A stretch of DNA of 64,000 bases from Guillardia theta CCMP2712 (GCF_000315625.1 NW_005434557.1:134386-198385), one strand, 5' to 3'; counted from the stretch's first letter, positions 3,026-28,799 are shown. The notes: generated from the letters alone by a model not told the origin. Numbers and translations are program-made.

Positions 3026-6000
3026 ATGAAGGCAGTCTTGCTTGCGATTACTGTGGCGACGATGGTGGCGAGTATAGGAGGAGGAGGAGGAGGAGGAGGA
3101 GGAGGAGGAGGTGAGAGGGGGCCTTCCACGTCTGTCACATGGAGGAGCGAGCGAGCAGGAGGATGTCTGGGTCCTGGCCAGCGAGTTGCGATCAGGTGAA
3201 AGACAGAGCACTGAGATGGATAGAAGAGGAGAGGAGAGGAGAGGAGAGGAGAGGAGAGGAGAGGAGAGGCGAGGCGACGAGAGGAGAGGAGAGGAGAGGA
3301 GAGGAGAGGAGAGGAGAGGAGAGGCGAGGCGAGGCGAGGCGAGGCGAGGAGGGGGGGAGAGGAGGTGCTGATAGGAGCATGTGCAGCAGGAAGCTTCCCT
3401 CCCTCTCCATCCTTGTGCTGCAGCGGCTAGCGGGAGGGCGATCTCATCGTATTCTGCTGCCTCTGAGCTCTTTTCGCTGATGCCTTGACAGGCGGAGGCA
3501 AACGAGTGCGAATGGCTCTCGAAGCTTCAGGAGGAAAGTCTGCTGCAGCTGCGCGATGGCCGGTGCGTGCGCGTGAGAGAGAGGAAGTGAGGAAGGGATA
3601 GCAGAGGCAAGAGGAGGGTAGCTGTCTATCGCAGACGAGGGTAGCTGTCTATCGCAGACGAGGGTAGCTGTCTATCTCAGACGAGGGTAGCTGTCTATCG
3701 CAGACGAGGGTAGCTGTCTATCGCAGACGAGGGTAGCTGTCTATCTCAGACGAGGGTAGCTGTCTATCGCAGACGAGGGTAGCTGTCTATCTCAGACGAG
3801 GGTAGCTGTCTATCTCAGACGAGGGTAGCTGTCTATCTCAGACGAGGGTAGCTGTCTATCTCAGACGAGGGTAGCTGTCTATCTCAGACGAGGGTAGCTG
3901 TCTATCTCAGACGAGGGTAGCTGTCTATCTCAGACGAGGGTAGCTGTCTATCGCAGACGAGGGTAGCTGTCTATCTCAGACGAGGGTAGCTGTCTATCTC
4001 AGACGAGGGTAGCTGTCTATCGCAGACGAGGGTAGCTGTCTATCGCAGACGAGGGTAGCTGTCTATCTCAGACGAGGGTAGCTGTCTATCGCAGACGAGG
4101 GTAGCTGTCTATCGCAGACGAGGGTAGCTGTCTATCGCAGACGAGGGTAGCTGTCTATCTCAGACGAGGGTAGCTGTCTATCGCAGACGAGGGTAGCTGT
4201 CTATCGCAGACGAGGGTAGCTGTCTATCTCAGACGAGGGTAGCTGTCTATCCCGTTGCTTCCCTCGGGCTTCTCACATTGCAACTTGTTCAGATTGGAAA
4301 TTTTTCTCGGGAAGGCACGACGATGATTCACAAGCCGAATAACATGTCTGTTCCGGCTGCTGCTGCTGCTGCTGCTGCTCCTCCCTCCTCCCTCCTCCCT
4401 CCTCCCTCCTCCCTCCTCTCTCCTCTCTCCTCTCTCCTCTCTCCTCTCTCCTCTCTCCTCACCCCTCACTCCTCTCTCCTCTCTCCTCCTAGTCCTCCTC
4501 CTCCTGATGGTAGTGCTGAAGCTTCATTTCTTCGACTCCAGGAGGGTCAAAGGGAACGAGAGCACCAAGAGAGTGAAGGTGAAGAAGCTGAGCAACCGAC
4601 AGCTCGCCAACATCGCGCGGGAGAAGTTCAAGTGGCAGCTCCTCCTGTTCTGCACCTGCGCCTGAAGCCTCACAGGTCCAATTTCCTCCAGATGTTCGAG
4701 CAAGTTGATCCGACCCGCGACCCCGTCGTTGAGTGAGTCGCTTTTGCCCTCTCCCTCCCTCCCTTCTTTCCCTCCCTCCCTCTTCCTCCTTGAGACCCGC
4801 TGTGAGCTCTGCTCTCAGGCACTGGAAGAAGCCGCAGGAGATGTTCTTGAACCCTCTCCCCGGACAGGTGACGTCGAATGAGCAGGAGCAGGAGCAGCAG
4901 TGAGGAGCAGAGTGGAGGAGGAGGAAGTAAAGGACCAGGACCAAGACCAGGGCCAGGAGGAAGGAGGACGGGGAGGAGGGAGGAGCAGGAGCAGCAGCAT
5001 CTACTCTGACTTTCAACGGCAGGACTCTCTCTACGACCTCACTGCCAACTCTGAGATCAAGGAGGTAATCGACGAGCTGCACGAACTCGAGAATGCTCAA
5101 CAAGCGACCTCGTTGCAAGAATTCTTCCAGTGCGTCCACAACGGCACAGCCGTGAGGTGATGCCTGCAAGCGACTGAACCCTAAACCCTTCACCTAAACC
5201 CTTTACCTAAACCCTTTACCTAAACCCTTTACCTAAACCCTTTACCTAAACCCTTCCTTTACCCTAAACCCTAACGGCGAGCTCAGAGGTCTGACGCGTG
5301 TGTAGGCCTCCTTCCAATACCCTCGGAGACAGACTCGATGTGAGCCTCGCCCTCTCCCTTTGCCTTTCCCTCCCCGAGGCCTTGCACAATCAGCTCGTCC
5401 TCTCACTGACTTGATCGCCTCAGATCTTCGAGGAGGGCAAGATCTCCAACTGCTTCCCTCGCGGGTTCTCGTTCAAGGTGAGGCTCCATCTGTCGCCTCC
5501 AGCTGACGTCGAGCAGGGTGAAGCTCTCTCTCTCGCTGCCAAGCAGCAGAACGTCAGTCCTATCACATCCCTTCCATGTCTGACCATCTCAAGTCCAGCT
5601 AGAGGCTGTGCAGGAGTTGCTGGAGGAGGGAGTGGATATCAACTACAGGAACGTTGACGGGGATACAGCTCTGTGAGGGCACACTCGCAGCACCAAGTGA
5701 AGGATAAGATGATGGATTTGTGCAGTCACTTGGCGAGCTACAACGGAGATGAGGAGATCGTTGAACTTCTCTTGAAGGCTCGTGACTTTCTTCCCCTCTC
5801 GTTCATCTTCTTGTCCATCTCACTTGTGTCTTTGAGCAGAATGGAGCAGACGCATCTGCAGTCAATGAGTACAACTCGACGGTTCTTGACTACTGCATGT
5901 CTGCATCGAGCCTCGTCTCCTCCTTCTCTCACTGCCTCCTCGCAGTTGGTCTGCTGACCCCTTGGCCAACTTCACCATCGAAGGGATCCGCTACAACCAA

Positions 6001-25821: not shown

Positions 25822-25884
25822 AGAGGGTCTCGGGCGACAGCCAGTCCAAGGACTTTTGCGCTTGTCGCCGTCATGGCCTCCCGC
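25822..25884 (-). promoter_or_regulatory. Eukaryotic type II SECIS element in 3' UTR of the DsbA/FrnE gene
   Basis: Minus strand reads AUGA-C-GGCGACAAGCGC-AAAA-GUCC-UU-GGAC-UG-GCUGUCGCC-C-GA-G: AUGA/GA core, GGCGAC/GUCGCC stem, unpaired AAAA and apical ministem. Confidence 0.88.
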
Positions 25885-25944
25885 AGCCATCGCGCCATTT
25901 AGACAAGGGGGAGGAGGAGGAGGAGGAGGAGGAGGAGGAGGAAA

Positions 25945-27430
25945 CTAGTCTAGAACCTCGCGGAACACCTGCTCGAAGACCTCCGGAGGCTGGGCGCCTG
26001 AGAGTCCCTCCTGCATGTCTGTAAGGAGGAGGAGAGGGTTGAGCTCGTTCGCACCTCTCCATTGATGATGAAGAAGGGAACACCAGAGACGCTGCGGCCG
26101 AACTTCTTCTTCTCGGCCTCAACCTGATCACTGTGAGAATAAGAGCAGAAGAGGGGGAGGGAGAGAGGGGAGGGGGAGAGGGAAGTAGCGACAGGAGTCG
26201 TGTTGGAGGAAATCACAGTGAAGAGATTGAGGCATCAGCAGCACCTCCTTGGCGAAGGCCTGCGGGTTGGAGATAACGCCCGCTGCCTCCTGGTGCTCCT
26301 GTTAGCCCCGCTGTCCTTCCCTCTTCCTCTCCGTCCCCTAAGTTTCCTCCTCTACCTGTCGATCGAGACCGACTTTCTCCGCCGCCTGCCACAGCTTGTC
26401 ACATGCTGAGGAAAAGGGTGGGGAGGGAAGGAAGGAAGGACCTGCTCCAGGACCTGAGGGTCTCCAATGTACTTCTCCTGCGAGAAGTAGTTCCTAACGC
26501 TTCATGTCAGCTCCTCCCCAGTCACCTCCCTCCACCCACATGAAGAGCTCTTCCATCAGCTCGTCCTGCTTCCCCTTGGTCCCCGCCCAATAGATCAGCC
26601 GGTGAGCTAAGAGAAGCGCGTCAGCTCGCCCCCCCCCCTCCCCTGCCTCCCTCCTCCTCTTCTCACAGTCGAAGGTGTTTCCCGTCATCCCACCCATGCT
26701 GAACTTCACGCCGACGCTGCATCGCAACCCGTGAGGTCACAGGACGAGGGCGGACAAGGTTGGCTCACTTGTCGAAAGCCTGGGTGAGCCGGGGCATCTG
26801 CCATCCGGTCAGTCTCCTCCTCGTCAAGTCGCACGAGTGACCATCATGCGAACTCTGTCGGCCCCGAACTTCTCGTGGTACATCTCAAGCTTGTTCCGAC
26901 CCTCCTTTGGAGCCTCAGGTTGAAGCTGGAAGGGTCTGGTGGCGAACAGGTCAGGGAGGGACAGGGAAGCATTGAGCTGCTCACCGCCAGTTCACTTCGA
27001 ACTGAACTTGTGGGAATTTCTTCATCGCCTGCTCCAGGTGACGCTTTCCCACGAAACACCTGGAGGGGGGGGTAAGGGGCGACGAGGCTAGACGGGCCTC
27101 ACCATGGTCAAATGGTGTCAGACACGATGTCAACAACAATGCGCTTGGCGGCAGACATGTCAGCAGCTCCTCCGCCTGGCAAGTCGATCCATGAACACAA
27201 ACACATCAGTGATCAGACATGTACTCACGTAGGTGCAACGCAGAAACAGTGGTGGGGCAATGTCGCTGAGGGGAAGCAACTAGTGCTGAAAGGCGCTTCG
27301 CATGCATGAGACAAGAGAGTCGGCGCGATTGCAAGGAAGGCGCAAAGGAGGATGATACTGCATGAGCACTGGTGATCAAAGCAAACAATCCAACACTGGG
27401 GAGGAGGCGCTTGCTGTGGAGCCGGAACAT
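25945..27430 (-). CDS. DsbA/FrnE-family thiol-disulfide oxidoreductase; selenoprotein (UPWC) with bipartite targeting presequence
   Basis: Spliced IVVDIVSDTI-[TGA 27108-27110]-PW|CFVGKRHLEQA...NWRPFQLQP...GNTFDSHRLIYWA...VSGVPFFIING...SGAQPPEVF. SECIS downstream. Exon 1 (27229-27430) encodes signal plus SSSFAP transit peptide. Confidence 0.92.
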
Positions 27431-28555
27431 GCTCAAGATGCCTCCGGTGACTGACAAGCTTGACAAGAGGAGAACTTCTGATGAAAAAGCGAACATCACA
27501 AGCATTTCAAGATCAGAGCGGGGTAACGGAATCATGAAGCATGTGAGAGTGGTTTGTAAAGCAGCATATTATGAGACCAGCAGATGAGAAGTGCATACAA
27601 AAGTTCACCCTTGAGTACCTCCCACTTCCTCCTCTGGTAATCGAACTGTGCGCCATATCCCTTGACCCTACTTCCTCCTTAGTCTCAACCCATTACTCTG
27701 TACGTCTTCTACTCACAACTGCTTTTGTCCTTCGCCTGGAGCATCATTCTCTCCTATGTTGTTCTTGTCAACCCTTCTCCCAGAACTCTCACGTCCATCA
27801 GTCTCTAGGAACCCATCACTTCTTTTCATATCATGGCATTCAGCTGTTTTCTTTGAATTTCTTGTTGAATACTATTCCACAACTTCCCTACGATCCACTT
27901 CTTCGACACTTCCTCATACCTGATTCTGCGCCCATTACACCTCATCCCAACCCTTGCCTTGGTGCCTTTGTCTTTCTACCTGCCTTCCTGCTTGTCTTCC
28001 TACCTGACGTCCTCCCTCCCTCCCTCCCTCCCTCCCTCCCTTCCTCCCTCCCTCCCTCCCTCCCTCCCTCACTCCCTCTCTCAGTCTTGGCACAAGATCA
28101 TGGGACAGTATGCACCACCCCACCCCTGCAATTTAATACCCCCTCTACCCTACCCAATACGCTCAATGCCCCTATCCCCTTGAAATTCAGTTGTAAGGGG
28201 GGGTGATGAAACTAAAAGATAGGATGAGGAGGGTGGGGGTACGTCTGTCATTCGTGAAAGGGAGTGGGGTGAAAGAGGCAAAGTTCGAAAAGGGGTGGTG
28301 GGGGTGAAAAGGTACCCCTTCATTACTCTGATAAATACCTGGTTTTATAGGGGTACTTCCATGTTTTTGCTATCTGGGGGTGGGTGGGTCCGCGGTTCAT
28401 CAATTGATGCGGGGAGGTGCATCGATTGAAGCGGATCTGAAAGGAGGGGTCATTATGACCTCAAAAAGAGGGGTAGGGGTGAAAATCTCCAGTCACAGAC
28501 TCTCTTGATGGCGATGGTGATAGCGATGGCTGCGCAGGAATAGTATCAGGAAATA

Positions 28556-28787
28556 GAGAGTCAAGGAGATGATAGTAGAGTCAAGGAGATGATAGTAGAG
28601 TCAAGGAGATGATAGTAGAGTCAAGGAGATGATAGTAGAGTCAAGGAGAGGATAGTAGAGTCAAGGAGATGATAGTAGAGTACACAAGGAGATGATAGTA
28701 GAGTCAAGGAGATGATAGTAGAGTCAAGGAGATGATAGTAGAGGCAAGGATATGATAGTAGAGTCAAGGAGATGATAGTAGAGTCAA
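28556..28787. repeat. 20-bp minisatellite GATAGTAGAGTCAAGGAGAT, about 11-12 copies
   Basis: Tandem units with few variants and no spacers. Confidence 0.95.
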
Positions 28788-28799
28788 CGAGTATCCTTG

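Follow-up and report, generated by a model that had tools for sequence, protein, structure and literature searches.

A Guillardia theta selenoprotein gene with a putative plastid-import leader ending in LRGG

In four-membrane plastids, the sorting of proteins that reside in the periplastid compartment (PPC), a remnant of cytoplasm that lies between plastid membranes two and three, from those bound for the stroma is only partly understood, as are the site and the enzyme of periplastid leader removal. A gene of the cryptophyte Guillardia theta CCMP2712 brings these matters together. A sequence-only reading of the locus had proposed that a nucleus-encoded selenoprotein carries a complex-plastid presequence ending in LRGG, the C-terminus of ubiquitin. 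What does the first exon of this gene encode, to which compartment would it send the protein, and what is its LRGG ending for? We consider these questions here for a stretch of 64,000 nucleotides (GCF_000315625.1 NW_005434557.1:134386-198385), hereafter the window, with all positions counted from its first letter.

Gene structure and cargo

RNA contigs from four public runs were aligned to window positions 25941-27950, and eleven GT..AG joints define a minus-strand gene of 12 exons (Table 1). Translated exon by exon with the split codons carried over, the gene reads in frame over 852 nt (283 codons and a stop), and its introns, all GT..AG, measure 43-121 nt. Raw reads of run X17, 12 in number, cover the 3' end only and are uninformative on the start of the gene. 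Intron 1, with donor GTGAGT and acceptor CAG, interrupts an Arg codon. Its removal (splice 27175/27229) is seen in an X8 contig at a depth of about 600 and also in the MMETSP transcript ORF P0001, whose sequence ...ALHLRGGAADMSAAKRIVVDIVSDTI runs exactly up to the TGA, although X8 and P0001 are possibly one data set and hence maybe not independent. The remaining ten introns are confirmed by RNA from two runs, with the junctions of exons 3-12 present in contigs of X1 and/or X8. The coding part of exon 1 translates to 67 residues and, from Met 27430, the joined reading continues in frame as ...LHL-R/GG-AADMSAAKR-IVVDIVSDTI-U-PWC. The in-frame splice proposed from the genomic sequence is therefore present in RNA, and the spliced, high-depth X8 contig and P0001 both contain exon 1 rather than starting downstream of it.

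Table 1. Features of the selenoprotein gene (positions in the window)
Feature	Position	Strand	Basis
5' UTR of the major spliced mRNA, about 50 nt, without AUG	27431-27481	-	ends of the X8 and P0001 genome matches
Exon 1 coding part: putative import leader to ...LHL plus Arg codon base 1	27229-27430	-	translation, RNA splice, P0001, frame check
Predicted signal peptide, residues 1-24	27359-27430	-	hydropathy, ASAFind cleavage-part score
VSSS-F: alternative signal-peptidase site SSS/F, with F29 (then A, P) at +1	27344-27358	-	ASAFind diatom matrix
Transit-peptide-like spacer, residues 25-64 (40 residues)	27239-27358	-	composition
LHLRGG part 1: L65, H66, L67 and base 1 of R68	27229-27238	-	translation, frame check
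Intron 1, 53 nt, GT..AG, phase 1	27176-27228	-	spliced in X8, retained in X1
LHLRGG part 2: last two bases of R68, G69, G70	27168-27175	-	frame check
Exon 2: GGAADMSAAKR-IVVDIVSDTI-U-P(W)	27103-27175	-	RNA joints, frame check; P0001 ends at its TGA
Sec codon TGA (predicted)	27108-27110	-	within exon 2
Exon 3	26985-27059	-	RNA joints, frame check
Exon 4	26842-26935	-	RNA joints, frame check
Exon 5	26769-26797	-	RNA joints, frame check
Exon 6	26667-26716	-	RNA joints, frame check
Exon 7	26540-26606	-	RNA joints, frame check
Exon 8	26442-26493	-	RNA joints, frame check
Exon 9	26356-26385	-	RNA joints, frame check
Exon 10	26245-26289	-	RNA joints, frame check
Exon 11	26055-26123	-	RNA joints, frame check
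Exon 12	25945-26010	-	RNA joints, frame check; stop TAG 25945-25947
SECIS-like hairpin, 3' UTR	25823-25884	-	Rfam SECIS_1, 22.9 bits, E 0.28, full model length

Both the X8 contig and P0001 follow the genome only as far as 27479-27481, with zero X8 depth over 27482-27548; because colinearity ends there, the major spliced mRNA has ATG 27430 as its first AUG. At the same point both sequences leave the genome, each with different letters. These non-genomic letters are absent from the window, where no upstream 5' exon was found, and in X8 they include the spliced exon 4/5 junction of this very transcript in reverse-complement orientation. The extra letters are probably cDNA or assembly artefacts that mark a true 5' end near 27480. 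A second form of the transcript is represented by an X1 contig, which keeps intron 1, has all ten others removed and is colinear with the genome to 27614. Its ORF halts within the intron after ...LHLREYMSDH, giving a product of the leader plus 9 residues, and its long 5' end holds in-frame ATGs at 27535, 27505 and 27496 and three out-of-frame ATGs before 27430. This form may be a regulated or non-productive isoform. Elsewhere in the gene, intron 6 (26607-26666, minus strand; 60 nt) is in frame and stop-free, and as a result a 77-codon ORF (26494-26727) spans exons 6 and 7, which automated ORF calling would fuse.

Exons 2 and 3 encode IVVDIVSDTI-U-PWC-FVGKRHL, in which a C-x-x-C active site is present as U-P-W-C at the start of helix 1, across the RNA-confirmed exon 2/3 junction. 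After the in-frame TGA the mRNA runs through ten more in-frame exons, and a match to Rfam SECIS_1 lies 60 nt beyond the stop, with a score (22.9 bits) that falls below the Rfam gathering score of 35. The pair of features expected of a eukaryotic selenoprotein gene, an in-frame UGA in a continuing ORF and a 3' UTR SECIS, is thus found here, the SECIS at a score below gathering. The fold start ...IVVDIVSD-x-x-[C/U]-P-W-C is shared with DsbA/FrnE-like proteins (PF01323), and exon pieces searched singly give weak, sub-threshold, colinear matches to that profile (E 0.15 for profile positions 84-111; E 0.081 for 154-175). The selenoprotein differs from that family in having Sec for the first Cys, in being eukaryotic, in its 12 exons and in its import leader. 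As far as sequence can tell, the gene product is a selenocysteine-containing DsbA/FrnE-like redox enzyme. A (cct)11 tract lies in the 3' UTR of the gene, at about 25908-25940.

A genome-wide PF01323 scan listed three other loci, and the small-exon selenoprotein gene was not among them. An in-frame TGA also occurs in another DsbA-like gene, L002 (G000:C67:300288-303911), which is almost intronless, with ORFs at 1408-1530 and 1570-2271 on the plus strand. It reads ...KRITIELVSDTM-TGA-PNGYIGKRHL, with the second Cys of the CxxC missing, begins with 30 extra residues, Arg-rich and of mitochondrial type, and matches PF01323 after the TGA (E 9e-14). An Rfam search of the 3.6-kb locus found no SECIS, and L002 is therefore either a pseudogene or a gene whose SECIS was missed. 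At L001 (G000:C43:343376-346711), ORF 1423-2079 encodes a DSBA-family protein without CxxC (…YFDVVSPYS…; PF01323, E 2.7e-13) that resembles a kappa-class GST or HCCA isomerase.

The leader and the LRGG motif

The predicted signal peptide consists of an n-region containing K and R (MFRLHSKR), an h-region (LLPSVGLFALI) and a c-region with A at -3 and -1 (TSAHA). The h-region is moderately hydrophobic, with a best 9-residue Kyte-Doolittle mean of 2.11, at the level (>=2.1) used in the genome survey described below. Residues V25-G70 (46 residues) hold 6 K+R, 0 D+E and 11 S+T (24%), a net charge of +6, and so have the acid-free, positively charged character of transit peptides of the stromal ASAFAP class. 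The ER signal peptide and Ser/Arg-rich stretch read earlier from the sequence are hence borne out as predicted features, on a leader exon that is real, and the combination of the two suggests a nucleus-encoded protein destined for the complex plastid, be it for the plastid or the periplastid space. The motif LHLRGG occupies residues 65-70, 9 residues ahead of the first strand of the DsbA fold, and is split by intron 1 into LHL(R) and (R)GG.

Orthologues of the leader were sought by word search with exon 1 and with P0001, which returned only the MMETSP ORF itself, and by a HMMER search of P0001:22-110 against 1.84 billion representatives, which returned only P0001; a contig look-up for P0001 found no encoding contig on record. 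Other leaders were looked for in the 64-kb window and none was convincing. The ankyrin presequence that had been likened to the leader does contain QRLAGG at about 3420-3440, but the two motifs differ: QRLAGG lacks the Arg and sits where the hydrophobic segment ends, 15-20 residues from the Met, and it was rejected as a member of the LRGG group. Near the ankyrin-region ORF a tandem array of about 20-24 nt units, gacgagggtagctgtctatcgca, occupies 3600-3760 (plus strand); another, gagtcaaggagatgatagta, also of about 20-24 nt units, lies upstream of the selenoprotein gene at 28540-28790 (plus strand), and a (ccct)n tract at 28010-28070.

The LRGG ending was followed through the 87-Mb assembly. 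A degenerate pattern for LRLRGG gave 353 matches, compared with 255 for the backwards pattern. Exact LRLRGG was encoded in 72 of 100 among the matches listed, where random codons would give 32% by our own calculation; the reversed peptide GGRLRL gave 193 matches, roughly one-third of them exact, and the LHLRGG pattern 64, of which 54 were exact. We examined 73 exact LRLRGG, 7 LSLRGG and 40 exact LHLRGG sites, with 20 exact GGRLRL sites as controls. A leader was counted where the in-frame upstream ORF had, 15-120 codons before the motif, a Met with a 9-residue stretch averaging >=2.1 in hydropathy no more than 32 residues after it. Such leaders precede 42 of the 73 LRLRGG sites, 13 of the 40 LHLRGG sites and 2 of the 7 LSLRGG sites, against 1 of the 20 controls (Fisher p 2e-5 for LRLRGG, 0.02 for LHLRGG and 1e-4 pooled). 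The counts are minimum values, since the procedure misses leaders split by an intron, that of the selenoprotein included. From Met to motif the surveyed leaders have a median of 42.5 residues (range 28-109), and the selenoprotein leader has 64. Ubiquitin itself is none of the surveyed sites, and Met directly follows GG in 3 of the 42 LRLRGG leaders. LHLRGG ends at least 13 other signal-peptide-like leaders in this genome. The LRGG ending of the selenoprotein leader is not a product of chance, and LHLRGG is an established variant of a widespread G. theta leader ending.

The survey also yields a set of candidate periplastid proteins, namely 55 loci (L004-L083 and L104-L143 in G000) in which a Met and a hydrophobic segment precede a spacer that ends in LRLRGG or LHLRGG; examples are L006, L009, L017, L026, L044, L047, L106, L115 and L142. 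At L026, L014, L007 and L030 the residue next to GG is Met. In the LHLRGG leaders L114 (SAAS/F), L111 (SCS/F) and L106 (VNA/Y) a likely cleavage site is followed by F or Y, and this possible aromatic +1 implies that F-type and LRGG-type signals can coexist and are not strictly exclusive.

The same ending recurs in proteins already assigned to the PPC. A text search of the PPC reference file of ASAFind 2.0 (PMC12136025 Appendix S3) finds 16 occurrences of LRGG. The G. theta set in it is built on heterologous GFP localisation and on homologues (PMC12136025), and in the sequences given there, reference leaders end in LRLRGG or xxLRGG immediately before the mature protein (slash): EF-1alpha (...SMLRLRGG/GKEKHH, the native N-terminus minus Met), 14-3-3 (...FALRLRGG/VDGE), RRM1, which is listed as GFP-localised (...SPLRLRGG/FRGD), cyclophilin (...QALRLRGG/GLPY), Ubc8 (...LIPLRGG/ANPT), starch synthase (...RMSLRGG/AGSD) and Cdc48 (...CMRLRGG/NVAM); the PPC ubiquitin precursor gt_155024 reads ...LRVRGG/MQVF (all PMC12136025). 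The LRGG-class members of this set are cytosol-type proteins located to the PPC. PPC proteins of the diatom T. pseudonana have the endings SLRGG (TrxH), DLRGG (Der1-1), QIRGG (sSec14), GRGG and ARGG (two Cdc48) and LRLGG (sDTC) (PMC12136025). In part 1 of Appendix S9 of the ASAFind 2.0 supplement, which covers the cryptophyte plastid set, an N-terminal LRGG occurs only in the G. theta FBPase, a protein without F at +1 that reads ...PQALRLRGG/SAATH behind a signal peptide, and none was seen in the F-type cryptophyte leaders of that part (PMC12136025). With LRLRGG or LHLRGG ending dozens of the genome's signal-peptide leaders as well as reference PPC leaders, the earlier suspicion that LRGG is functional is strongly backed at the level of sequence, as a class hallmark of leaders.

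Destination of the protein

We think it somewhat probable that exon 1 specifies a two-part import leader belonging to the LRGG-ended class that serves G. theta PPC proteins. By the cryptophyte rule, V rather than F at +1 leads to the periplastid space and not to the stroma. The PPC is favoured because the reference LRGG members are in the PPC, because F-type leaders in part 1 of Appendix S9 are without LRGG, and because the canonical site AHA/ leaves V at +1. Like the G. theta PPC leaders (Gould et al. 2006 as compiled in PMC12136025), the selenoprotein leader combines a predicted ER signal peptide with a transit-like stretch, with x-[RH]-L-R-G-G directly before the mature domain (PMC12136025). 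It differs from them in its longer spacer (64 residues from Met to motif, against the median of 42.5), which is acid-free, and in its SSSFAP element, intron-split motif and selenoprotein cargo. An acid-free spacer is typical of stromal rather than PPC leaders (ASAFind 2.0, PMC12136025) and counts against the PPC, as do the possible aromatic +1 residues of L106, L111 and L114 and the retention of intron 1 in one RNA assembly (X1).

A stromal destination is possible, if rather doubtful. The signal peptide would then be cut at SSS/F, the transit peptide would start with F-A-P in the ASAFAP manner and carry the protein through the inner two membranes, and LHLRGG would be irrelevant or lie near the stromal processing site. 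With stromal ASAFAP-type leaders (Kilian and Kroth 2005; Gruber et al. 2015, PMC4329603) the selenoprotein leader shares the signal peptide, the F-A-P and a Ser/Arg-rich, acid-free transit region, here of net charge +6. Scored with the published ASAFind diatom matrix, for which the published transit-score cut-off is 2, the site 28/29 (SSS/F) has the better 25-position score (6.26 against 4.54 for 24/25) and the better transit score (5.28 against 1.30), which also counts against the PPC, and the plastid UROD KAJ1495518, one of the entries in Appendix S9 (PMC12136025), has an AxA site with FAP a few residues on. Against this stands the cleavage-part score of 3.24 for AHA/ (24/25), a canonical -3/-1 site at an ideal distance from the h-region, compared with 0.98 for SSS/. 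The earlier description of the transit peptide as F-initial therefore stands if the cut is at SSS/F and falls at the canonical AHA/, where V is at +1 and F29 lies 4 residues past the site. 'F at +1' hangs on the cleavage position that SignalP gives, because ASAFind inspects only 2 residues either side of it and from 24/25 would miss F29. The leader further departs from the stromal type in ending in LRGG, an ending of PPC reference leaders that was seen in no F-type cryptophyte leader of Appendix S9 part 1.

It is improbable that the signal peptide delivers the protein no further than the ER lumen or secretory pathway and that exon 1 beyond it is a linker. DsbA-family enzymes often work in oxidising compartments, and this would be a natural place for a DsbA-like oxidoreductase; the h-region, moreover, is only moderately hydrophobic. 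A linker of 46 residues with this composition, acid-free and rich in K+R and S+T, would by arithmetic from its composition contain L[RH]LRGG, a PPC-type hexamer, with a chance of about 3e-5, and the LRGG class is represented in the reference set by cytosol-type proteins of the PPC. Least probable is a start at ATG 27158 (MSAAKR...), with exon 1 untranslated or regulatory and the intron-retaining mRNA the relevant one, perhaps for a cytosolic isoform: bacterial FrnE-like proteins start at about the position of M74, and in the X1 contig, with its long 5' end, the leader ORF ends in the intron, but splicing of intron 1 is seen at high depth in X8 and also in MMETSP, seven AUGs (27430 included) precede 27158 in the retained form, and the leader bears a motif that is functional genome-wide.

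Removal of the leader and its meaning

The C-terminus of ubiquitin is LRLRGG and is processed by deubiquitinases, viral papain-like proteases cut LXGG, and LRGG peptides serve as standard substrates of deubiquitinases. The periplastid membrane has a translocon that is itself derived from ERAD and dependent on ubiquitin. If the selenoprotein is a PPC protein, UGA would be decoded as Sec by the host cytosolic machinery using the 3' SECIS, the nascent chain would enter the ER lumen and its signal peptide would be cut at AHA/V. The transit-like part would then carry the protein over the periplastid membrane via the ERAD-derived, ubiquitin-dependent SELMA translocon, the leader would be removed at or just after GG, and a soluble U-P-W-C thiol-disulfide oxidoreductase would be released into the PPC. 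A ubiquitin-type peptidase may perform the cut, since ubiquitin itself ends in LRLRGG, and the listed PPC proteins of diatoms include a deubiquitinase, ptDUP (PMC12136025).

The motif lies at the leader/mature boundary and, in EF-1alpha, abuts the native start of the protein. By analogy we infer cleavage after GG, and with EF-1alpha (...LRLRGG/GKEKHH) as the model the boundary between leader and mature selenoprotein would fall after 27168; LRGG may accordingly mark the cut-off point of the leader. The last four residues of the leader are identical to the ubiquitin tail (six in LRLRGG leaders), and in natural ubiquitin fusions, too, the tail stands at the precursor/mature boundary, an arrangement found in the PPC ubiquitin precursor gt_155024. 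Unlike ubiquitin, the selenoprotein leader lacks a ubiquitin fold ahead of its tail, and its cleavage after GG is proposed by likeness. The T. pseudonana N-terminome supplements (PMC3774753), which list peptides without their preceding residues, contain no peptide starting after the RGG of TrxH, sSec14, Cdc48-2, Cdc48, Der1-1 or sDTC.

A more far-reaching reading, tentative and in our view possible rather than likely, is that LRGG is a ubiquitin-tail mimic cut by a PPC ubiquitin-type peptidase and that the selenoprotein leader is an FAP/LHLRGG hybrid. LRGG would be cut as preproteins leave SELMA, and competition between cleavage and onward import would settle whether a protein stays in the periplastid space or reaches the stroma. 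The PEXEL/TEXEL motifs of Apicomplexa are likewise short and conserved, stand at a set distance behind a signal peptide, are cleaved in transit and mark a trafficked class; they differ from LRGG leaders in sequence, compartment and protease, and the parallel is one of analogy only.

In the literature searched, we found no paper that joins LRGG or LRLRGG with the periplastid compartment, although an earlier description may exist. What is new here is an LRGG-leader member that is a selenoprotein, with an LHLRGG variant that is intron-split and combined with an FAP element. Were the ubiquitin-tail-mimic and hybrid reading true, it would be the first selenoprotein assigned to a periplastid compartment. 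More generally, dozens of G. theta genes, and diatom PPC proteins too, have a conserved ubiquitin-tail hexamer at the leader/mature boundary, and ubiquitin is used by the translocon that such leaders would meet. LRGG thereby offers a mutable handle on periplastid import, for alteration of the motif, for deubiquitinase tests and for prediction of the PPC proteome. The selenoprotein gene adds a redox selenoenzyme to the LRGG class and, with F-type and LRGG-type signals together in one leader, provides a natural test case.
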